The notes below the pieces were generated by a model. It did not search any database and was not told where the DNA came from. It worked only from the letters and a program-made list of their open reading frames with translations. DNA of 63,707 bases, the filler included, from Hyphochytrium catenoides (lineage: Eukaryota; Protista; Hyphochytriomycota), in the NCBI GenBank assembly GCA_900088475.1. It is 7 parts of 7 records of this genome, joined end to end, with 100 filler letters (N's around TTAATTAATTAA, not from the genome) between each part and the next. Parts side by side here need not be neighbours in the genome. Positions count along the whole stretch, not along the records: positions 1 to 21,333 come from FLMG01002879.1; 6 more parts are not named here. One strand, given 5' to 3'. The position numbers were made by a program, and so were the translations under genes. Below, piece after piece: positions 4,804 to 21,333 of the stretch (the stretch's first letter is position 1; the number at the start of each line of letters is the position of its first letter).

Positions 4804-6890
4804 ATGCATCTTGGATCACCTGTCGCCGAAGTTTTAAGCAAGGTCATGATGTCCTTGCATGTGGTCATGACAGCTTTTATCGTCGTGACTTTCTTCAGAA
4901 GGAGGCACCTCTATCCAATGACCGTCATGCCCATCTGGTGGCTTATTTTGCCCCATATTAGCACTCCATGGGGTGCCTTCATCTACCTCTCAGGCTTCTT
5001 CCACACGCCCTGCAACTCCTTAATTCCTTATCTACACTGGGGGATACTTTCCTGCTGCTCCATCAGTCTTCGTGCAGTGCTTCATGCTCTACTATAACCA
5101 CTGCCATCAGCATCAGCAAATAGCGCAGCGAGAAAGACAGAGCAAGAACTGTGGGTTACAGCTGGCAACGGCACAGGAAAGAAAAGGCAGCCAGTCGTCA
5201 ACAACGGATCATGCTGTCGGTCCTTTGGCCACAGTGAAGAAGCGGTTCGCTAGTCTTACATTCCAGCAGAAGCGCGAACTCTACGCTAGTTTGGTCTTCA
5301 TTGCTGGCATGGCTATTACTCTCCCTTATGGAGGTCTTGTCGTCCAGACCTACCATCAGGCCCTGAGACCTGAAGAGCCCCATCCGGAACTTCTCTTTGA
5401 CTTGCAGGCTTGCCGACTTCAAGCTACGAATGTGGTGAGGAGAGTTCTTCTTCCTGCCTCCAATCTAGTATTCTTGATCACGTTCTGGAGCCCGATTCCT
5501 TTGAAGAGATGGCGCTTACTTTATCTGTTTCCTTCTTTGATGAGGCAGCAGCCTCTCATCATCACTCAGTGCCCGATTGATTCTCACCGCCAGCATTGCA
5601 AGCTATGTCACTTCCTTGAATGTTCCTCGTCTCACCCTGCCTTTCTTCCCTCCTGGCAACCTACCAGCTGCTTGTGAACCACGCGACTATCTTGCTCATT
5701 ATCTTGATCATGCTGGGAACGTACTGGAAGCTTCGCAGTGTACAAGAAGCGTTTAGCATGAAGAAGCAGTTCATGCGCCTTGCTCTCTACATGCTGGTGG
5801 TATCCCTGCCAGTACAGGTCATAAAGGCGCTGCTCGGTGTTCATGGCCCTCGGTGGTTGGCATTCGCCTTCTACTTTACCTCAGCGTCTCTGTACCTCGT
5901 CTACGAGGTCACTTGTGACATCATCCCCATCATCATGTCCTACAAGGAGGAGAGAAGGAAGCTCGGAGAGCAAATAAGCCGGCGAAAGAACGATGGAGGT
6001 GGTCCCAGGAGCGCGCCAGTGAAGTCCTGCTATGAGCTGCGATGGATTTTGATGCGGAACAATGTGGACCTGATGGAAGGCTTTCAGGGATATCTAGTCA
6101 AGGAGTTCTGTGTAAGGTGTCCGAGGGATACGGTTCTCTTTTTTCTTGCCGTCCCTTTGGCTATTAGGTCAATACGCTCTCAGAATCTACGGTTCTCTTC
6201 TTTCTTGCCGTCCCTTTGACTATTAGGTCAATACGCTCTCAGAATCTCGTTTGCTCCAGTTTGCTTATGAATGCGGCTGCTATCGTTGTCTCTCGGCTTT
6301 GTCCTGTTCTTCTGCTGGTAGCAGCAGTGTAAAGAGGACTTCCTCAATTGCTCCTCCTCGCACTTCCTGCTACTCATTGGACAAGAGGGCTGGTCCTCGA
6401 ACTCCTTGTTAACTGTACCGCCCTGATGATGATGCAGTTTGACTTAACACCGTCATGGTTGGTTGCTTGACCATGCCTTTTTGCCTTTTATCTTATTCAG
6501 GTCGAGAACATTCTGTTCTTTCGAGCTATCATAGCCTTCCGTGGTATCTCCCATCCGTCGGAGAGGTTATCCACCGCACAATCTATCGCGAAGCGCTTCA
6601 AACTCGCTGGCACCTCCACGGAGGTAAACATTAGCGATTCCTTGAGAAGGACGACCCTGAAGAGGCTGGAGACGGTTAGTGAGAGCACAATAAACGGAGA
6701 TTTCTTTGAGGCAGTGGAGGGAGAGGTGCTGACGATGATGGTGGATCCCTTCAATCGATTTCTTGCGCGAAGTCGCATCTTCGTGCCTCCTGAAGCTTAC
6801 CAGCCATTAACCTCATCGCCTGCGGTTTCGTCTCCTCGGTCTGTCGACCCCTGCACCTCTATCGCTTCCTATAAACCCCTCAAGTCCTAG
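4804..6890 (+). pseudogene. 7TM-RGS paralogue, copy B, frameshifted in exon 1
   Basis: Same exon structure as copy A (4804-5434, 5668-6111, 6501-6890). Alignment to A shows a 5-nt deletion (A tta atg atc ttc ctc; B tta a-- --- ttc ctt) at about 5023/5024, which truncates the frame at 5097. Confidence 0.78.
6130..6247 (+). repeat. 2 x 59-bp tandem duplication in intron 2 of RGS copy B
   Basis: acggttctct(t/c)tttcttgccgtccctttg(g/a)ctattaggtcaatacgctctcagaatct at 6130-6188 and 6189-6247, with 2 mismatches. Confidence 0.9.
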
Positions 6891-7948: not shown

Positions 7949-10297
7949 CTAAGCTTTGACCAACTCCTGCAAGGGGTACGTGGGAAGGATGTCCACAGGT
8001 ATCTTAGCATCTTTGATCCGCTGCAGAGCCCCCTCCAAAGCAGAGTCTTTGGGAATAGTCCCATACGTTTCCAGAAGAGTCTTGGCTGCTTCCTTGTCTC
8101 CAGTGGCCTGGGCGTGCAGAATTGTCCTACCGAGCTTCTCGACTCCCTCTTCCACCTTCTCAAAATTCACTTTGAACTTTCCACTTTCTTCTTCCACCTC
8201 AAAGGCCCCGGACTCTAGGAGGAAGTTAAAGATCAAGGCCTGACCCTTTCCATGCGCTTCCCGCACTCCAAACCGGATTGAGCGGAAACAGCCCGCTAGA
8301 AAAGTCACATACGCTGTTTGGTCAAGGGACGTTGGCAGGACGCCTTGGCGAATCAGATAATGTGTCGCCCAGAGACCCACAATATCCGCCTTTGCTTCCT
8401 CCAGAACGCTGTGGAGCTCTGCATGGCAAGCACGGACTGTGGTCTCCTTGCCGTTGACCTCTATGGTGTGAGGACCGATCCCATGTACCAACTCATGGCA
8501 GAGTGTGTGCGAGAAGAAAGCGTCAAAGGTGACGAGATGCTGTTGGCTCTCAGCCACTGATATCGGTGTCATGGGAAGAAGAATCTTTTCAAACTTTGCC
8601 TCTGAGGTATTCTTCATGAGAACCTGCGCGGTGCCCTTCTTCTTGACCACTTTCTCGTCGTTCGGAAGATTGAAAGCGAGAGTCTGAGGTCCGGCGCAGT
8701 CTCCTCCTGCGCAGACGACGGACATGACACGAATGGGAGCCGCAGAGCCAACATCAGCGTTCTTGAATCTCTCATCCATCGGGAGGTTGCTCTCTAGCTC
8801 TTGCAACTTAGATCCAATTGCCTTTAGCTTGGCCGTTTCTGCATCATCTCTGATTCCGATGTACACTTCGAAGGCAGCTTTAGCACCGAAAATGTCATCT
8901 TTGTAAGTCTCATAGGGTCCAATGGTGATGTCAATGGGCGAGTCTAGCTCTAGCCAGACGAAGTCGCTGGGCACGTAGTTGTTGTCGAGGAAAGCTTGGC
9001 TGCGCAGCTTCAGATACTCACGAAGCGACTCAGAGGTTGTATCTTTTGAGGCTTCAACGAGAAGCTCTGCTGCCTTTGCCAACCAGCGCTGATAGGCCCG
9101 GGAGTACGGAACTACCTTGAGCTCCCGCGTGGCATCGTCTCTCTCGATTGCGTGGAAGTATCCCTCTCCTGCCTCCTTGAGGTGAGAGTTCTAGAAGATG
9201 TTATAGTGCAATGGAGGGTCAACAAGAGAGAAAAGCGATTAGTTAGGTGCCTCCACCAGCCTTTGTTCGTAGAGAAAGGATAACAAAGGAGCGCGAGGGA
9301 TCTACCAAGAAAGACTATAAAGCGGAGCAAAGCTGTCTCGAAGGAGAGCAACCTCTGGCCTAGGGACCAGCGCTAAGAGACAAGAATGGCCAGCATGGGG
9401 AGAAAAGAGGTCGGTACTATTGGTTTTCATCACAATAATGACAGCGGATGAAGGCAAGCAGTGTCAAACCTGAGTTAACCACTCCTGGAACTCTTCCTTT
9501 TCCATGTCAGGCGGATAATAGTTCACTCCTGCAGGCTTGGAGGAAGGCACAGCAAGACGGTATTGCAAAACCCCGTCTGNNNNNNNNNNNNNNNNNNNNN
9601 NNNNNNNNNNNNNNNNNNNNATACAGCTGTGCATCTGATACTCGAAGATGTCATTGATTACATCTGCAGCTTCAATCAACTTGTAAAGGCACACTCGGTC
9701 ACCCACTTCGAGATGTGAGATGTCAGCGGTGAGATCTGCCGGCGCATAGTCTTCAGCCATTTGTAAGAGACGCTTCTCTTCCTCCTCAGTATTTGGTGCG
9801 TAGCGAGTCTTCAAGCTCTCAAGAATTCCTTTCTGGGACTCAGAGACGCTATAGTTTTCACCCAAAAGAGTGATGATGGCTTCCCAAGAGCAGGTACTTT
9901 GCCCGGGCAATGTCCAAGCGTACGAGGACGACAAAGTGAGTAAGAAATGGTCTTGATGCGCGTTAGGTTCCGACGATTTGGAAGGAATCTGTTCTGTTAG
10001 CAAGAACTCGAGAGCATTCCACGGCAAAGAAATGCCAAATGTTGCCTTAATGCCTTCAAGAGCCGTAGACAAGGAAGAATGGTTCCCGTCCACTCGAAGA
10101 CGGGATAGCGGGCACTTGATATTCCATGGCTCCTTCGACCCAGTCTTCGCGATCAAGAGTTCCTGAGGCTCCTCGCTAAGGATCCAGACATTAACATGCC
10201 TTACCCAATCTTCTGACGTTACGTCCAGAAGCTTTTTCTGTCCTTTTCGCTGACCTTCGCGGGTAAAGACCGGCAGCACCAGGGCTTCCTCTGCCAT
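7949..10297 (-). CDS. Nudix hydrolase 3-like / dipeptidyl peptidase III (peptidase M49) fusion protein
   Basis: Exon 10297-9470 (contains a 41-N gap), intron 9469-9191, exon 9190-7949. Collinear with plant NUDT3: YYPPDMEKEEF, IDITIGPYETY, AFNLPNDEKV, FFSHTLCHELVHGIGPH (HEXXH), LEEAKADIVGL, FRSIRFGVREAHGKGQ, PVDI. The N-terminal part has a Nudix-like fold (HVNVWI...ELLI). Confidence 0.93.
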
Positions 10298-12776
10298 TGC
10301 GCTTTGTTCCGCAGCTCTCGATGGCCGCTTCTAATCAATCTGTTTGATGAGAGTAGTGTTCCTCTCAAAAGAGCCGCTTTCCAGTCGTCGCTGACGGACG
10401 GCGTGAGGGGTAAATAAAGAAGGGTGTCGGGGTTGGCTTGCTTGCTTTTCCTGGTCAAGAGTTCTATCTCTCGATGTCCAAGGCCCGCGGGCCAGAAGAC
10501 CTGCTGGAGAGAAGTCAAGGGAAGATCTTCCTCTTCCCTCCGCTGGGATCCTACTCTCCCTCTTCCCTCCTCTCCTCCCTATGCTGCCCTGCTCCTATGG
10601 AAGAAGTAGAAGTAGAAAAGAGATGATGGCGGAAACAGGGGATCAGAATCCTCTTATGGGTAACCATGTTACCTAGGGAGCTCCATTAGCTGACATTGAT
10701 GTTAACTTTGGGTATCTGAGTTACTCCTGCTACAGCCTCAATAGTCTTGCTCCTTTTTCTCTCCTCCTCCTCCCTTGATGAAGAAGAAGATGCTTGTTGT
10801 TGCTGCTGCTTGCTTGCTGCTGTTGCTGCTTAGGGGCTGTTGTTGCTGCTGCTGCGGGCGCGTGCGCGGCTGCTCGTGATATATAACGAAGACGGAGGAG
10901 ACCGGCACCGCCACGCTGGTTGATGATGCGAAGCGAGGTCGTCGCCACCACCACCACCACCCTCTTCGTCGTTCTGCCTCTTCTGCTGTTGAACAACTTC
11001 TGGCTCGCTGGCGCTGCTGCTTGCTACGGAGTAACTTCTATCATCATGTCTTTTAGGTGTACTGCAGGAGGATGAGGAGGAGGGCCAACTAACAAGCAAC
11101 AGCGCTTCTTCCTCATGCTCTCTTCGCTTCTTCTCTTCGCATTTGTCTGACATAACGTTGTTGGTCCATTCTATCCTTCGCTTTTATGGGAAGTCTCTTC
11201 TCTTTACCAACAAGCCTGGTGGTCTGACAGCGGCAGCAGCAGCAGCAGCAGGAGTAGCGTTCCCTTTTTTTCTGTACGACGCTGCACCATGATGATGATG
11301 ATTATGATGATGATGATGGACGTTGTGTTTTTCTTCTCCACCCACCAGTGGACAGCCATCCTTTACCTCCTGGCTCCTGCTGCTACTATTTTTTATTTAT
11401 CTGGCGATAGTAGTGTCAGGGATGCTGTTAGTTGCTACTTCACTCAGCATTTAGAAGACTGAAGGTGAAGAGCTATGCACTTTAAAGGAGAACGCAGGAC
11501 CCTCACCGTTCAAGAAAGAAACAGCTCAGTTGGCAGACTACAGCGGCTTTTTGTCACTAAGAAACTGACAAGAATTTGGGATCACTTTCTTGGCGCTGTC
11601 AGAAAAAAAGCTGCGAAACTGGCTAATCAGCATCTTCTCAGCCTTCACAATATCCTGAAGGCCTATTGCAGCTTAGGATTAGCACTAGATCCAGATAGAT
11701 TGGATCTATTATTTCATTCATTTGTTCTTTTTTCGGGTCTATCATGCTTCACAGGCTTCACAGGCTTATCAATTTTCAGCTGGTGCCGCTGTAAAGGTTG
11801 CCTCCTGAACAGTGAAGGTTGCTGTTGACGACGAGACGCAAAGTCCCGTGAAGCAGCAGTACAAGAGTGGTATCGATGACATCGCAAAAGGAAGTTAATC
11901 AAAGCTTTCACTAACTTCCACGGTAAGTTACAGCTGTACCAAAGGACTCCAGTCAGGTCTACATACAAAGCACTACCGAGGGTCGACAAAGGCGCGTAAG
12001 GCATAGAAAATATTTGCTGACTAACGTTAGAGCTGTAGAAAGGAGCCCCTCTTCCCTCATCTCCTCTTCTGTGCACCATCATTGATAAACTTCCTTCATC
12101 ATTCCTCTTTGCTCTCATGGAACAACTATGCTACTCCCGAGATAGAGCGTCTGTGACTATCTTCTCCCTCTACGCCTTCTCTCTCACTCATTAGACCTTG
12201 ACTTGCCATTCTTGCGAGAGATCTGAGAAATCGAGCGAGGTTGGCACATCCACGGACCGGCAAGAAAGTTAGAAGAAATTCGAGCTCCAACCCTTCTTTG
12301 TTGTTGGGGGGAAGGCAATAGAGTACCGGCGAGTGGGGTCTTAGCATACATTTTGAGGCCATTCAAGAGGACGTCGCTCGAGGGTTGCCTGAACGCCTTG
12401 CTCGAGCAGAAAATGGAACTGAATACTACTCTGTGCTCGCTATGTGCTGCTCTTGCTAAATAACGGACAGCAGATGCCGCAGCCACAGTGCGTTGTGTCG
12501 CCTGCGTTCTGTCTGGTGCTGCTAACAGGGCTATTATTACTGATAAAGTAGTTCTTCTCTTATAAACTTGCTAAGCGCCAGTCGCAGTTGGAGAAGGTGA
12601 ATGAACCAGCAGTGCCGTCGTGCAATTTGAAGAAAAAAGGAACCTAGATCTCTTATAAGATATAATGTTTCTCTTGTGGGTCGAATCGGTTCTTCCAATT
12701 AGCGGGAGACGCTAAGTTTTGCTAAGTTCCTGGTCGTTATTCGGCTCTTCCAGGCTCTATCATGCTCTCGTTGTTA

Positions 12777-13151
12777 TTAGCGGTTGCGTCCATCTACGTG
12801 CTTCACCGAGACTCCAGCAATATCAAAGTCATCGAAAAGTTTGGCGTTGATCGCGATCCGCGGCTTCGTGAAATCAGGTTTGCCTGTCTGCGGAGTATAG
12901 GAACACTTTGACTCGCAATGAGTCGTGCAGCCACAAACAGTGCAATGGAAATGCATCCGGAGAGCTTCTGTTACTGGTGTAACCCGTCAGTTGACCTCTC
13001 TGGATAATCTTGACTTGGTCCAAGGGATTGAATGCCCATACCGCACCCGCTTGACGCAGACGGTGCAGGTGCAATCCGTGATTTCTGTTGGTGCTTCAGC
13101 GCCTTCAAGCTCGGTCTGACCACAGTGACATTTGCATTTAAGAGACATCAT
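12777..13151 (-). pseudogene. GFA/CENP-V family zinc protein (glutathione-dependent formaldehyde-activating enzyme fold), intronless, bacterial-type, with two compensating frameshifts
   Basis: Reconstructed as MMSLKCKCHCGQTELEGAEAPTEITDCTCTVCVKR / GAVWAFNPLDQVKIIQRGQLTGYT / ..MHFHCTVCGCTTHCESKCSYTPQTGKPDFTKPRIAINAKLFDDFDIAGVSVKHVDGRNR*. Motifs CxCG, CxCxxC-x-KRGAxW, CxxCG and INA are all present. ATG (13151) and TAA (12777) share one frame (375 nt); the middle segment lies in another frame. Confidence 0.85.
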
Positions 13152-14480
13152 TTGTTCTCGCTCGGTCCTTGTACCACACTTCTTGTCCGTCTCTTTTGTG
13201 ACAAGATTGTTGTCTTGTCTTCTGCTGGAATAATGGTGCTTCGGGAAGAAGAGTGAATTGTAATCATTTGGTGAAGCATGCGGGATTCAGGCTGCTGCAG
13301 CCGGTTGCTGATGATGAAGAGAGGGAAGAGGCTGATTATGGGCGCGCCTACTATCAGTAGTTGTTAGGGTTCACTGAAGCACTGCTAAGAAAACACGAGC
13401 AATAGAGTCTCGGGAGGAACCCAACCCGCCGTAGCAGATAGCACTACAATAATGAGGGCTGCGCCGTTATTCAAGGTATAAATAGATGTGTTTTTTTTTG
13501 CAGGAAAGCGAATGATGAACGACGAAGAAAGTCAACAGACCTGCATGGGTGCGGCTGTGCTGGACTTTAGTGCTTCCCAGCTCAATTAGGCCATGGGCCA
13601 TGGTGCAGGTCTAAGAGGAGGAGACAGAAAGAAGCAACCATCATAGAGGATAGAAGAGCAAGCTAGCAAGCAGCAGAGAGCCAGCTTGGAATATCAAGTT
13701 GAATCCCAAGCTCTTCCTCTTCCATCCTCATTCAACCCAACAAGAAAAGCTTTAGTAAAATGGTAGGATATAGTGGGCGGGCCTCTCCTATGACATACAC
13801 TCCTCGCCACCACCTCCATCATATTTTGGCCGCGGCAGTTTATATTTTTAGCTATTATAAAAGAAAGAGAAGACGAGCAACCACAGATGAAGAAAGAATG
13901 GTGATCTGCCAAGCATTCTCTTGGGTAGACTGACGAGCAGAAGTCTGTCATGGGAGAGACTGGCCAATCCTAGAGATTCGCAGTCTCCTCCAAATAAGAT
14001 GATGTCGTAATAGGCCTCAATCAAAGAATCTATGGAGCTGTTTGCCAACAACATGTGGGCGGTGGTGTGGATAGGGCCAATGCATAACCTATTGGGCTTT
14101 AGATCCAGGAAAGGGGTTAGTAAGGCCCCATAGGCAGTAAATGTACCAGGCCAGATTCAACGTCAAGACTGGAATAGGATTCGATCATCATAGGTTCTAT
14201 CAACATCTATAGACGACTGCGTGGTCCTCCTTCGGACATTTACGGCGTTGCGGCTGTTGTCCAATTGCCGGATAGGTCGCCAGTTCCGGAGTAGCTGAAC
14301 GACATATAATTATAGAAAGAAATCTGTACAAACAGCTCTAACAAAATTAATGATCACCTAGAGATTCTCTTCCGCCTGATACACTGCGGGAGACATGCAG
14401 GACTGTTACCTAATTATGTTGTCGCACGAAGAGGGATTCTAATAACAAGTTGTACTACTACAACTAATAAGAAGTAAAGG

Positions 14481-14565
14481 AGGAAGAAGAAGGAAGTCGG
14501 AGGTGGAGAAGAAGAAGGAGAAGAGAAGAAGAAGGAGAAGAAGGAGAAGAAGGAGAAGAAGGAAG
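14481..14565 (+). repeat. Purine-rich simple repeat including (AAGAAGGAG)n
   Basis: aagaaggagaagaaggagaagaaggagaagaagga read directly. Confidence 0.8.
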
Positions 14566-16168
14566 ATAAGCAAACGAAGATGAGAGAAAAGCGACAGAGT
14601 CCTGGATTCTTCAACACGACGTTTTCTTCCTTCACTACCATTAATGGAAAGGGAAAGATGGGAGACGGAGGAGGAGAAGAAGCAGGGGTACCGCGGCCGA
14701 GACCTTCATCAACACCCTCAATCATGCAAGCTAGAGCAGGTCCAACTGCTGAAGGAGAATACGCTTCATTTTATTAGTGTACCAAAGGAAAACCTCACGT
14801 CTCCTCTATTTATCCACCGGATTTATTGCATCCTGTATACTTTGACCAAGTGAGATAATGGACTCTTCTTTTGCGATCATCATTATCTTGTGTCTACTAT
14901 ATTGGCACAACAGGAGAGTCAATCACAATCATCGTTTGTCGAGGTTCTATCTCCTCTCCTTGTCGCTCGTCGCTATCATCAGTGGAGCAAGAAGGAAACA
15001 GCATAGCGAGCTCCTCTATCAATCAGATCCACGTTGTTAGATCTTATCACACCACGTTAGATGGACCTTCTTTGAGTGACTGTGGACAGAAGAGAAAGAA
15101 CCCGAGGACAGGCTGCATGCATGACTACGACCCTGGATGGCACCATCACTAATATCTATACCAAGCACACAACAGAGAGTGTCACATTGTTTACAGTACG
15201 AAGGCTAATAACTGTAGGACTATCCACTGACAGAAAGTAACTCACCTCCTCTGAAGCTTGGATAATGGACGGGACCATAACTCTGACCACACATAACGTT
15301 AGGGAGTGAATATCTCCCAGTAACAGTCAGAGTAAAAGTCAAAAAAACAGTTGTACGGATTTGGGGTTGTATGTTCTATTAGCCACAGGATAGGTAGGGG
15401 CTTGTGCCAGTGGATAGTATTTACCGTATTTCACCAAGCACTTTTGTACATCAAGTTGTACATCAGAAGTGAAGAGGGAAAACAGGAAAAGAGGACTTGA
15501 GAGGGGGACAGAATGGGAGGGGAGAAGAGAGACAGAGAGACAGCAGAGAGAGAGAGAGAGAAAGAGAGGACAAGAGAGAGACACAGCGAGTGCACGACAA
15601 CCAGGCCGTAGGCAGCATCAGAAGGGCGAAAGAGAGGGAGAGAGAGAGAGAGAAAGAGAGAGAAAGAGAATGTGGCGCAACAACAGGGCAAGAGCAGCTT
15701 GCAGGAGTTGCTGCTGCTGCTGCTAGGGAAAAAATGCCCACCCTCATACACAAGTACTCGATATCCTGCCACATCTCTATGAAGTTCATTGCTTGTTGGC
15801 AGAAGAACGCCGCGGCGCTCCTCTGTAACGCTGTGTTTATGAGCCGAAGCAGAACAACAAATTGCCACTCTAATCACCTTCAGCCTTATTATCCCGTGTC
15901 TTTTTTGAAACAAGCGCTCCCAACAAGAGGGCCTTTATTGCCTTCTGCCGCCGCCTACTTCCTCCCCCAAACATCCCCCCCACACCACATAGAGACCGGC
16001 GACAGACTGCTAACAAGCTGAAGATACGTCTTCTAACCTACTCAAGATTAGCCTTGATTGAAGAGGGATAAACCTGATCCCTAGCTAAGCAGGACAGGAA
16101 GAACAGACAGAGCAAGGAGGGAGGAGGAAGAAAGCTTTCATTGCATCTGTTACTAGTCATCATCGAAA

Positions 16169-16534
16169 ATGGAGGAAAGGAATCAGAAGAAGAAGTTGGG
16201 ATTTCACGTGACGGCGGATGAGAGTATCTCCGAAGGCACCAGTCTCGTAGGTTACATAGAAGCCAGCTACCCTGATCTAGTCAAAGCATTCGGGCAACCT
16301 TCCATAGACTATGGAGAAGAGGCATACAAAGTGCAGAAGCAATGGATTTTAGTGACGACATATGGCGGCAACGTGGTGACTATCTATGACTGGAAAGCGA
16401 AGCAATACGGCATTCGGGTTGAGGAAGTCGATATCTGGAATGTCGGTGCTTTCAATGCCACTGCTTTGGCGGAGCTCGATCTGATACTGGAGACTACGGA
16501 TCTTCGATACCGCGTGACGCCGGCTTGTGTATGA
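16169..16534 (+). CDS. Intronless 121-aa hypothetical protein resembling a small conserved tailed-phage protein family of unknown function
   Basis: Clean ORF with a gaaaATGG start context. The motif string GTSLVGYIEASYPDLVKAFGQP...YKVQKQW...VVTIYDWK...EEVDIWNVG matches, from memory, the pattern GTxLxGYIxxxYxxLxxxFGxP..YKxxxEW..xATIY(N/D)WK..W(N/H)(V/I)GG of phage hypothetical proteins. Confidence 0.72.
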   Translation: MEERNQKKKLGFHVTADESISEGTSLVGYIEASYPDLVKAFGQPSIDYGEEAYKVQKQWILVTTYGGNVVTIYDWKAKQYGIRVEEVDIWNVGAFNATALAELDLILETTDLRYRVTPACV

Positions 16535-16930
16535 GCAGCGGTGCAGGAGGTCTTTTTTCTTTCTCACGGTTAAAGCCTGTGATAAGCATACTTGGTCACC
16601 GACGGACCGCAGCCGCATTCCTCAGTCTTTCATCTTTTGATAAGGTTCAACGACAGCGGTGACTACTAGGCTCCGCCCTTCCTTCTGGCATCATCTTCAT
16701 GTTTCTGCCAGCTAAAAGCACAGAGCTTGGTGTAAAAGTAGCTCACCTTTCAAACATGATACTCCGTATTGCCCGTCCTTCTTTCCTTTCGCTTTTCCTC
16801 CTAGTGGTCACCTTCTACCGGCTGCCCTGATTCCATCTCACTATTACTGTTTATCTTTTCTTTTCGCTGTCATTCACTCAATATACTTTCCGTACTCCCC
16901 TCCTCCCTTGCTCTCTTCCTACAGCTACTC

Positions 16931-17257
16931 TGACCCATTTTGTCTATTCAAGCTCCCTAGCGTTCACCACCCCACTGAGTGCATGCCTATCTCTCTCTTC
17001 AACAACGGTCATTGTCATTAGAATCACCCTAATAAGTGGCGGGCGACGCTTGCTTTATTCGTCTCTGATAAATCAGTACTTCATAAAAGGGCAAGGATAA
17101 AGGGGAAGAAGCAAGCATCAAAAGAGGAGAGGAAAGAGAAACAAAAGTCACGAAGTCTTGGTCTAAACAACAACTCTCCCCTGCCACCATCATTGTAAGA
17201 AAAGGAAGTATCATAGTTGAGTTGTTCCTTAGGAATAACAATAGGAGAGAATAGAGG
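16931..17257 (+). repeat. Diverged ~320-bp direct repeat, copy 1 (copy 2 at ~21005-21333)
   Basis: Shared collinear blocks: agctccctag, tgagtg(c/t)atg, aatcacccta, agtacttc, ggcaagga, agaagcaagcat, acgaagtcttggtct, ccaccatca, aaagga..atcatag, gttcct. Confidence 0.75.
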
Positions 17258-17532
17258 TAGGGAAGATAGGGCACCAGGAATAGCATCAGTCTCGATCAGG
17301 CAAGCAAGAGCAAAGGTTCAACTGATGGTGAGAAAGATCGATTTAAATCTGAGGGAGATTATCTTCTGTCACGCAGTGGCTAACCTCTAGCCTGCCACAG
17401 GCCGCTAGTGTGTGGGTAACAACCTCAGCTCGCATCTGGTGCTGCACTTCGTGATGACACCTCCGCGGCGGTCATCTAAGCTGGTCCTACTTATCGAAAG
17501 TACGGTCAATCGTCAATGCCGGTTCGCAGTAA

Positions 17533-17988
17533 TAGGCTGGCCTAGGTCCAGAACGTTTCTGGCGCCTGGTCCGGCACCTAGGTTGAGGCTGACAGCCAGG
17601 CTGGCGCCGCTTCGGACTATGGCCAATTTCCAATGACATTTATTACTAGCTAGGCTAGTCCTAAGTCTGGGGCCAAGCTACCGTTGCAAATAGGCTGCTA
17701 CTGAGAGCGAGACCTAGGCTGACATCTACTCAGGCAAGGTAGACTATCTCTAAAGCTCCTGGTAACATCCTTCGCTGGAACCTTAGCCGGCTGCTAGAAT
17801 GACAACTAGGCAGGACCTAGGCGGGTACCAAGGCAACGGTTGATACCAAAGTTAAGAACGGAGTGGTCTTCAACGCCGACCCCAAATATTACATCCAAGG
17901 GCGGTCGTCATCAGTACTTAGGCTGCTGGTATCTACGGCTAGGACGTAGGCTGGCCCTAAGCCTGGCACCTAGGTACATACCTAGGTT
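17533..17988 (+). repeat. Degenerate GC-rich minisatellite, unit approximately CCTAGGCTGGCA
   Basis: At least 9 CTAGG (6 as CCTAGG) in about 450 bp, interspersed with aggctgg/ctggcacc variants. Confidence 0.55.
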
Positions 17989-20900
17989 GTGCCGTCAGCA
18001 GATGAGGCTCGACAAGCGGGTATGGGAGGGTGGAAGCAATACGGGCTAGCTGTAGAAGCTGCTTTCCTGTATAATGAGTCTGAGTCGTCGAGCTGCCCGG
18101 ATGGCTGGTATACTTATCTGAGTTACTTCTCCACCTCGAACACAGCGGCCAGATTTTAGATTGCTGTCGGAAGGGGCAAATCTTTGAGGAAGCTATGTAA
18201 GTTAAAGCGACACGATGAACACTCTCTTGCTGATAATCTACGTCATTCGCATTCGTCTCTCTTCTTTATCTCTCCGTGACCCCTCTGCTGCTCTTCTTGA
18301 CTTCCAATCTAATTGTCTCTTGCGCATCACTCTTCTGCAGCTCTAAATCCTCGGTTGTCTTATCTTTTTGTGTAGGTGTCTCTGTTCTTTGATCTCTCCA
18401 CCCTCGTAATATAAGCTGCTACTCCCCTCTCTTCTCCATCTTGCCCTTCTTGTACCTCTCTCTCTCTAAAGCTCTCCTCTTTTCCCTTTCCTTCTATCCG
18501 CTCCTCCTGTTTACGTCTTTTGTCCTAATCTCACTTTCTTTAGCCCATTCCAATCTATCCTCAATTGGGGCCTATTATTGTACAATGTGCAGTATCATAT
18601 CATGCTTTTAGCAGCACTTTTATACTCCTCCGCTCCGAGGTGCTGAGGAGGAAGCTGAGGAAGCCTTTTGCTGCACAGAAATTCAGGCCAGGATGAGGGT
18701 GGAGAAACAGAAGAGACCACATCAGACCCCGGATTACGTTTGAGAGCTAAAGCGAGAGGGGATGCAATGTATGTGGCTTATTAGGGAGCACTATATGCCT
18801 TTCCTCAAGATGATGCAATCTCGCTACAATCCCCCCGGGCCCTTTTCCTCATATGCATCACAAACTGCTGCAGTCGAGTGCCTCCCCATTTCAACTTTTA
18901 TCATCTTAGGCAGTCACAGGTTCCAGGTGGCAGGATAGGCTTGAGCTACCACCAAGTTTGCTTTTTTCCTCGACAGCGGAGGTGGAACGCCGCAGCAAAG
19001 AGGGAATCTAGAGTAAAGTCTGAACAACTTCTCAAGACGAAGCGCCTTCATACTGATCATTTAGTGTCTCTTTTCTCCATATTTGCCTCCTCTCTCTTCC
19101 GTTCCGCCTTGCTTTCTTACTTTAACTCTTTCCCTTCTCCTTATTATGTTGCTCTATATCTTTATTTCCTCTTCATTTTTGCCCTCTGCTTCCCTTTTCG
19201 GTCTTACCTGGCCTTCTTCGCATTCTACTGCTGGGTCTTTTCCCCTTTCTCTCTTCTTATCTGTCTCTCACCATGACTGCCTTTCTTCTTACTCTTCCTC
19301 CTGCAGTAGGCCTTCTTCTTGCTCTCTTTCCGCTTCTTCCAAGATATTTTCTTTCAGTCGTTGTTCGCAGAAAGATTGATCGGCAGAGCACCAAGAGAGT
19401 CACAGTCATTCAGTCAATTGACACATAATCATCATCAGGTCCCTCTGTTATATGTTCATCTCGACAGAGCTTCAGACAACATCAAAGTCTACCTCTGCTA
19501 GAAGTCATCAGTTCTCTCCATTCTCCCGTGTGTCGGTCTCTTCTCTTCCTGCTCCTCTGATTCCTCTCTCTGAGCAGTTACAATCTCCCTCACTTTCATT
19601 TTTTCCTCGTTTTCTCGCTGTATCCCTCCTCCTCTATTCTTCTTTGCACGATATCTCCCGTCCTCGTTCAATCTCTCTGACCTTTTCCCTTCTCAGGCAT
19701 GAACCTTCCTCTGTCCTCTTCCTCTCGCCGCTACTCTCCCAACCGCTTTAAATTAGCATCACGCTTACTATTCCTAACTCAGCTGTGTTTTCTTCTATGA
19801 TAGATTGACATAAAGCCAAGCACAAGAAATCATGTCAGAATCGGTTGGACTCGCCTCCCATCGCCTTCAGCATCATGACCCTTTCTCTCTCGTTGTGTCT
19901 CTGTCTGTCTTCCTCTCTTTCTCGCTCTTTGCTTTCTCCTTTCCTTGCGTCCCATTTATTTTCTTCCTTCGATCTGCTGTCTTTTCCTCACTGCCTCCTT
20001 TCATCTTTCTACACTCCATAAATTTGTCTAGTTTTACCCTGTAATGAGAGCCTACAATATGGACTATCGCTTTCCGCCTCACCAGCTCTCACCACGTGCC
20101 TCTTCTCTTTCTTAAGATGCCTCTCTCTCTCTCTATATATAATATATATACATATGCTTGTTTGCCTCCTTCAGTGCACTCAATCTTCTTGCACTCGTCC
20201 TGGTGATCTCTTGTCGTTGCCTCTAAGTACAATCTCCCTTGGCGTCTCTATCGCTTGGGGGTGATAAGTAGTCTGTATGATGTTGCAATTTTCACTCGTT
20301 CTGGATAGTCCCTGTCCCACTTCCCTTATTTCTTAGGGTTGTAACATTTGCTCTTTTTGTTATCTTCCTTGTCTGCATCTTGTGGGTGATTCTCTCAGCT
20401 TCATCTCCGTCTTGGCTCACTCTTACTCGGCTCTTTTCAATAAATACGGGTGAAGGCCCGACCCCATCTCCTTCTTTCATTTCGCCCTCTTGGCTACCCT
20501 CCCTTGTCGTAAATAATGGCTCACCATTCTCCGCTTTCTTGTAAGCTTTCCTCATCTGACTACCTTGAGCTTCGCTTTCTCTTCTTACTTTTTATTCCTT
20601 AGCCTGTTTTGCTCTCCTAGCTTAGGGTACTCTAACAAACTATTTGGCCACCTCTCCTTCTCACTCTGCTGCTTTGGGGATCGTAAGTACTGAACAAAAA
20701 CATTATCCCTCGTCCCTCCGAATTCAGTGTCTCTTTTTATTTGAGGCCCTCCTCCGTCTCTTCTCTTCTTTCTCTTTCGTGGTCTCTGTCTCGTCAAAGT
20801 TCATTCATGCTTTCCTTCCTTTCCGTCCGCTTGCTCCTACTGGACATTTCGTACCTGTTGCCCTGAACGTTCTATACCTCCGCCATCTTCCTCTTTGCGC

Positions 20901-21004
20901 TCTAATTCATATGATAATCTTGCCGTCCTACTAGCCTCTAATACGCTGTATAGTGTGAGCCATCAATAATCGCTAGCCCGGGTACTTCTTTCTCTCGCTG
21001 CTTT

Positions 21005-21333
21005 TGACTTTATTTTTTCGAATATCGAGCTCCCTAGGGTCTGCCAATCACCTCCCTTGAGTGTATGTCCCCTCTCATCCCGGACATTCATCTGTCTCTG
21101 AAATCACCCTACTATATAGATGACGGGCAATGCTTTTTCTTCTTGCTTCTGAATTAGTACTTCCAGAGAAGGCAAGGAGATTAAAAGGAGAGAGAAGCAA
21201 GCATAAACAAAAGAAAGAAGCACGCTACGAAGTCTTGGTCTGTCTAACCCCCAGTCCACCATCAAGACAGGAAAGGAGCCATCATAGCTGCTGAGTTCCT
21301 CAGCAATTACAATCGGAGGAGAGAGGAGGAGAA
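21005..21333 (+). repeat. Diverged direct repeat, copy 2 (runs into linker gap)
   Basis: Collinear with 16931-17257; offset about 4.08 kb. Confidence 0.75.

Follow-up and report, generated by a model that had tools for sequence, protein, structure and literature searches.

To our knowledge, it is rare for a bacteriophage gene to enter the nuclear genome of a eukaryote. Well-studied cases are cdtB and aip56 of insects, single-gene transfers from a phage or bacterium into the nuclear genome that encode toxins, for which expression and selection have been shown and orthologues are present in several host species (bioRxiv 10.1101/544197; PMC10120054). These few transfers gave the host new functions. 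The open reading frame (ORF) described here lies in a window of 63,707 nucleotides from Hyphochytrium catenoides and resembles cdtB and aip56 in being a single, intact, intronless ORF of prokaryote or phage derivation with bona fide genes of the host around it. For cdtB and aip56, however, a toxin function is known and several host species carry the gene, whereas this ORF is known from a single occurrence, at the level of sequence. Single-gene transfer from a phage or bacterium to the nucleus is already known as a phenomenon, and the ORF is a further case of it, very probably a horizontally acquired and still intact accessory gene of a tailed phage in a eukaryotic nuclear genome, as represented by one assembly.

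The described proteins most similar to the ORF protein are encoded by phages. A tblastn search of 50,697 phage records returned matches annotated as 'hypothetical protein' in the uncultured myovirus MW202796 and in Flavobacterium phage immuto, and further searches, in which the query was a more consensus-like member of the family, extended the set to Methylophilales (OM43) phage Melnitz, Prochlorococcus phage P-SCSP2, and Streptomyces phage BRock; in the cultured phages, the annotation of the family copy is always 'hypothetical protein'. The homologues of Melnitz, P-SCSP2, and BRock share the domain, length, conserved motifs, and predicted fold of the ORF protein, and the same four features match in QQO92051.1 (Flavobacterium phage vB_FspM_immuto_3-5A) and UOF82029.1 (Myoviridae sp. 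ct2os315). The surroundings of the genes are different, in that the phage copies are found in tight same-strand arrays, whereas the ORF stands alone in eukaryotic low-complexity DNA. Unlike the phage copies, the ORF also has a purine-rich N-terminal extension and is not preceded by a ribosome-binding site. The positions of the ORF, its parts, and the nearest host gene are listed in Table 1.

Table 1. The phage-type ORF, its immediate 5' flank, and the linked host gene (positions along the window).
Feature	Position	Strand	Basis
Intact 121-aa ORF	16169-16534 (stop included)	+	ORF listing; ATG start, TGA stop
Phage-family core (profile positions 10-103 of 120)	16208-16498	+	Six-frame hmmsearch, i-E 2.8e-32; alignments A1 and A2
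N-terminal extension, 13 codons	16169-16207	+	Profile match begins at 16208; repeat family D2; pLDDT by block
GA-rich host-type low-complexity tract, ~35 nt 5' of ATG	16096-16134	.	Repeat family D2
In-frame TAG, 12 nt 5' of ATG	16154-16156	+	Codon listing, -16..-4 sequence
Nudix + Peptidase_M49 fusion gene, plant NUDT3 type	7949-10297	-	Peptidase_M49 match

An ATG, 121 codons, and a TGA were found exactly where the initial annotation had placed a clean and intronless ORF, and the motif order that it had given (GTSLxGYIxxSYxxLVKAFGxP - KVxxxW - TIYDWK - WNVG) is present and, in alignments A1 and A2, coincides with the part that a real protein family conserves. All invariant and near-invariant family residues fall inside this core. 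The in-frame TAG closes the reading frame on the 5' side and thereby makes the ORF self-contained, with a single domain and at most about 40 nt per side outside the homologous core. Its first 28 nt are purine-rich, like the GA-rich low-complexity repeats of the host, and belong to repeat family D2 (16169-16196), which also has copies at 16096-16123 and 16107-16134, and residues 1-10 of the protein were modelled with low confidence (block mean pLDDT 60). Both features suggest that the start codon and the N-terminal extension may be host-derived, and the GA tract further upstream sets the 5' boundary for whatever DNA is phage-derived. The start codon is accompanied by an A at -3 and a G at +4, and a Shine-Dalgarno remnant is absent from the -16..-4 sequence. 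With respect to the earlier description of this start context as host-like, the purine at -3 indeed recurs in 3/3 identifiable host starts, but three comparators are too few for such a label.

The relationship of the ORF protein to the phage family was examined with profiles from which it had been left out. The whole protein scored 108.8 bits against such a profile, exceeding 78% of 86 independent members from IMG/VR (median 99.6 bits), and the core was recovered in a six-frame translation search with an i-E value which, for a profile built without the ORF protein, indicates a match far beyond chance. Across the 126 sequences of alignment A2, three residues are invariant (W59, Y73, and G93 in ORF-protein numbering) and eight near-invariant (G28, L37, G42, P44, K54, T71, K76, and W90), every one of which is retained in the ORF protein. 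The family is characterized by the motif series GTSLxGY / LVxxFGxP / KVxxEW / TIYDWK / WNVGG, by proteins of approximately 100 aa that are acidic (median pI 4.9; 4.73 for the ORF protein), and by genes spanning 25-64% GC. Homologues of the ORF show 43-55% identity overall, the best value among approximately 15 billion proteins being 55% over 80 residues. A word-indexed search returned three metagenome proteins of 120 aa with 43-45% identity (E 1e-12 to 1e-10), while no match to the ORF protein below 1e-30 was obtained in an exhaustive HMMER search of 1.84 billion representatives, and the databases searched contain no identical sequence.

The occurrence of the family was surveyed in metagenomic, viral, and prokaryotic sequence collections. 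In the exhaustive HMMER search, 947 representatives (50%-identity clusters) were detected at E <= 0.001, and a word-indexed search with the 126-sequence profile yielded at least 1,840 clusters (90% identity) at E <= 1e-5, for which all 120 matches listed are unnamed metagenome proteins. No eukaryotic name appears among the detected relatives listed, all of which are phage or metagenome proteins. A six-sequence profile led to 455 family loci in IMG/VR that were confirmed by tblastn, and a scan of 185,579 prokaryote species genomes gave only 9, all on short MAG contigs, although the patterns of the two scans differed slightly and the two counts are not strictly comparable. The genome scan was based on alignment A1, A2 being too diverse, and on the viral contigs matches came with the profile, not with the ORF protein alone as query. 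Because so few loci were found in prokaryote genomes, the family can be assigned to phages; it is carried by them and not by bacterial chromosomes. Thus, the earlier description of a small and widespread hypothetical protein of environmental tailed phages has been borne out by the IMG/VR loci, the metagenome representatives, and the cultured phages alike.

Phylogenetic analysis of 176 sequences produced an unresolved bush, in which the ORF protein is a deep branch without a supported sister and has a terminal branch of 1.16 (median 0.8). No donor clade was recovered in this tree, and nesting of the ORF protein within one phage clade was not seen.

Gene neighbourhoods in phages, which had been proposed as a further check, were compared across 86 loci and consist of early-gene arrays without a conserved partner. 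The contigs of the nearest relatives are phage-like, with small, tightly packed genes on the same strand, among which Phage_L5_gp82, GP88, DUF932, Ku, and PolyA_pol are present, and the median gap between the family gene and an adjacent gene is 5-48 nt. Recurrent neighbours include a sigma factor, an HTH regulator, an Fpg/Nei glycosylase, guanylate kinase, and RNA ligase, in addition to Ku and DUF932; the phage setting of the family is therefore that of early and nucleic-acid-metabolism genes, not of the virion module. Clustering of the neighbouring proteins revealed no conserved neighbour, the most widespread neighbour family being present in 14/86 loci. Just upstream of the family gene in several of the nearest relatives, an 'antirestriction protein' or DUF932 gene is found (5105-5953 of locus L001, which is MW202796; 7939-8928 of L084; and 1785-2795 of L086, where Ku is also just upstream). 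A link between these genes and the function of the family was considered and rejected, as they are neighbours in only 3/86 loci. Domain architecture varies to some extent within the family: tandem two-domain versions exist (P0124, P0129, and P0247), and fusions to unrecognisable partner domains are represented by the P0250 group (~181 aa), P0130, P0134, and P0238. The fusion partners have no Pfam match, and the C-terminal domain of the 181-aa group, modelled with pLDDT 82-95, has no PDB match of its own.

Searches of curated libraries agree with the initial annotation that no function has been assigned to the family. Neither the ORF protein nor up to 126 relatives had a significant family match in Pfam, PHROGs v4, NCBIfam, or PADLOC, the anti-defence and defence models of PADLOC had no significant match among seven family members, and a sequence-profile search of solved structures matched none. 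The single candidate, Pfam DUF7738 (PF24880), was rejected: 3/126 members match it weakly, the best at 23.3 bits against a gathering threshold of 24.6, about 30 residues are all that the match covers, a scan of the isolated domain lowers it to 14.9 bits, and the ORF protein does not match at all. A literature search found nothing published on DUF7738.

Structure prediction followed by Foldseek, a check that had likewise been suggested, returned a confident model with matches to phage proteins and to one mitoribosomal protein. The AlphaFold2 model of the ORF protein, computed from the 126-sequence alignment (pLDDT 91.7, pTM 0.84), is a single-domain alpha/beta structure with the order b-a-b-a-b-b-b-a-b. 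Against BFVD, it matched 12 uncharacterised phage proteins at E <= 0.001 (TM up to 0.79, E down to 1e-9), as well as proteins of Tupanvirus, Fadolivirus, and Mimivirus, weakly (E 0.03-0.07, TM 0.44-0.55). Against the PDB, the sole high-probability match was chain AR of 6Z1P, the mitoribosome of Tetrahymena thermophila (TMq 0.60, E 0.017), which is mL103 (UniProt I7MKV5), a ciliate-specific, uncharacterised protein of the large subunit (PMC7326499, Supplementary file 2); the main text of that paper does not discuss mL103. A second model, of the 181-aa fusion P0250 (pLDDT 77), again had mL103 as its top and only high-probability PDB match (E 0.0032). For the two models, the mL103 matches have a Foldseek probability of 1.00, TMq 0.36-0.60, and 9-14% identity, and the sequence profiles of the family yield no match to mL103. 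Thus, mL103 is the only solved structure that shares the fold with high probability, although it has no detectable sequence similarity to the ORF protein and is a ribosome-embedded protein of 348 aa compared with the 121 aa of the ORF protein. The predicted resemblance between the family and mL103 is reproducible and confined to the level of the fold, and on the basis of these models mL103 may itself contain a phage-type domain.

A role for the phage protein can be proposed only tentatively. It would bind, stoichiometrically, without enzymatic activity, and possibly as a dimer, to a conserved macromolecule of bacteria, with nucleic acid and the translation or nucleotide machinery as candidate targets, and it would serve in host take-over or counter-defence. 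This is a best guess of low confidence, appreciably more likely to be wrong than right. A non-enzymatic role is suggested because the residues at invariant positions (W, Y, K, T, G, and P) do not form a catalytic set, and a dimer is suggested by the tandem two-domain versions; the proposal also draws on the acidic character of the family, the lack of a conserved operon partner, and the embedding of mL103 in the ribosome. A further and rather unlikely extension is that the eukaryote has co-opted a phage take-over protein that binds a bacterial-type machine (the ribosome, or nucleic acid or nucleotide machinery). The protein would then act on ingested or symbiotic bacteria or on the host's own bacterial-derived organelles, in parallel with an older and independent recruitment of the same fold as ciliate mitoribosomal mL103, and this reading, taken as a whole, is improbable. 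If it is true, eukaryotes would have drawn innovations repeatedly from a dark phage family.

The eukaryotic nature of the surrounding DNA is indicated by genes within the 21-kb stretch that contains the ORF (positions 1-21333), in which runs of N occur only at 2437-2493 and 9580-9620. The ORF lies in the gapless stretch of 11.7 kb from 9621 to 21333, together with the first exon (9621-10297) of the Nudix-M49 gene, which has a GT..AG intron of approximately 275 nt (about 9190-9468) and contains the second of the two gaps. With host genes searched exon by exon and under a length filter that hides full-length relatives, the M49 exon matched plant NUDT3 at only 55-56% identity. In the tree, it is sister to the land-plant NUDT3 clade with 100% SH-aLRT, on a long branch outside the clade, and the next group out comprises bacterial M49 proteins. 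Judged by these sequences, the host is a eukaryote with plant-type genes that lies outside the land plants. A spliced gene with 7TM and RGS domains is also present in two tandem copies (891-2919 and 4804-6890), whose exons are 78-90% identical and whose introns have diverged. Copy 2 has frame breaks in exon 1 (about 5030-5075) and in the RGS exon (about 6497-6642) and looks like a decaying pseudogene. Just after its exon 2, a 60-nt unit is tandemly duplicated at 6129-6247 (96.7% identity).

Apart from the ORF, no ORF of at least 96 aa with a Pfam match was found in 10.3-21.3 kb. No phage or mobile-element ORFs were found in its flanks, where none of the ORFs from the 86 phage loci was convincingly matched either, and no tRNA, rRNA, or Rfam matches were detected in the 21-kb stretch. 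Repeats bracketing the ORF are limited to low-complexity GA/CT tracts. A profile search of the six-frame translation detected no second or decayed family copy, and it also led to the rejection of a candidate decayed copy at 17861-17968 that had been suggested by weak tblastn matches. Several statements of the initial annotation are consistent with this picture, including the isolation of the ORF from viral neighbours, its location in eukaryotic DNA (it is linked without a gap to the spliced Nudix-M49 gene and lies near the 7TM-RGS gene), and the decay of a neighbouring gene, which can be identified as the frame-disrupted RGS copy 2. The paralogue count that it had recommended gave a single copy in the stretch, and its suggestion of a transfer from a virus or prokaryote to a eukaryote agrees with the phage-only relatives and the gapless link to a spliced host gene.

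A phage origin of the ORF and its isolation in eukaryotic DNA are accordingly well supported, with a high degree of probability. The donor may have been a lytic phage from water or soil, or a bacterium that such a phage had infected, taken up by the eukaryote; flanking phage DNA would never have been transferred or would have been erased, and the start codon with the first ~13 codons may come from purine-rich host sequence. An assembly artefact or contaminant, in which a read from a phage or bacterium had become part of a eukaryotic contig, would also account for relatives that are found only in phages, but it is very unlikely: the ORF is in the middle of the gapless 11.7-kb stretch with host-type repeats on both sides, it is bounded within approximately 40 nt on each side by DNA without phage homology, and its GC (0.49) and GC3 (0.56) equal the values of the host exons. 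A phage contaminant would moreover bring tightly packed genes, whereas no phage ORFs are adjacent here, and a chimera would need two junctions located exactly at the ends of one gene. The weak fold matches in Tupanvirus, Fadolivirus, and Mimivirus could point to an indirect route, by which the gene arrived via a giant virus or some other viral element integrated in a eukaryote. The fold matches among phage proteins are far stronger, however, remnants of giant-virus or other viral genes are absent from the 21-kb stretch, and the relatives at the sequence level are all phage or metagenome proteins, which leaves such a route with very little probability.

What has happened to the gene since this transfer may be explained in two ways of about equal weight, either of which is quite conceivable yet somewhat less than an even bet, and the intactness of the ORF and its near-consensus score would fit purifying selection and recent insertion equally well. 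The insertion may be recent and neutral, the ORF being neither expressed nor used and still intact for lack of time to decay. A profile score as high as that of functional phage copies would be expected right after transfer, family donors of approximately 50% GC exist, and no orthologue or paralogue was found in the databases searched. The same lack of orthologues for a single-copy ORF speaks against the plausible alternative that the initial annotation had inferred, a putative domesticated gene whose phage protein the host would express and whose reading frame selection would keep intact, with possible roles, for example, against bacteria eaten or harboured or on bacterial-type organelle machinery. 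The synonymous-codon log-likelihood per codon of the ORF is -0.03, between the values of host exons (-0.015 to 0.085) and those of GC3-matched phage homologues (-0.19 to 0.045), and the ORF does not differ significantly from GC-matched neutral recodings (p = 0.28; host synonymous-codon bias is weak), a result that would fit a neutral insertion and lends domestication no support. The host-like GC and GC3 were also considered as signs of amelioration, and this was rejected because both values are within the range of the family genes and a matching donor is possible. On the other hand, a recent neutral insertion has to explain why the adjacent phage genes left no trace, despite the short spacing in phages, and why host-type microsatellite DNA starts approximately 35 nt from the ATG, which would imply either a precise trimming to one gene or time enough to erase the flanks; in addition, the RGS duplicate in the same stretch has already acquired two frame breaks. 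The decay of this neighbour is in turn consistent with domestication, as are the fully host-like flanks, the full-length ORF with all invariant residues, the purine at -3 and G at +4 without a Shine-Dalgarno remnant, and, by analogy, the possible earlier recruitment of the fold by a eukaryote as mitoribosomal mL103. An organelle role would be harder to reconcile with the N-terminus, which is unlike an organelle targeting peptide when the sequence is judged by eye and not by a tool.

The transferred gene belongs to a family that is very common in phages (at least 1,840 clusters at 90% identity) and absent from the curated libraries searched. With an intact copy in a eukaryote, the question of what the family protein binds can be approached in another system, independent of the phages. 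The reproducible fold match to mL103 represents a testable lead for both proteins. If the ORF is unexpressed, it would instead provide a clean example of a recent and minimal single-gene insertion from a phage into a eukaryote.

The composition of the DNA on either side of the ORF is also distinctive. From 13000 to 21333, strongly strand-asymmetric low-complexity DNA is observed with a GC skew reaching -0.42, the + strand being purine-rich with GA repeats at approximately 13-16.5 kb and pyrimidine-rich with CT repeats at approximately 18-21.3 kb, and the ORF is located at the switch between purines and pyrimidines. GA-rich repeats are present at 14.5-15.7 kb as well, and their complements at 18.4-20.1 kb.
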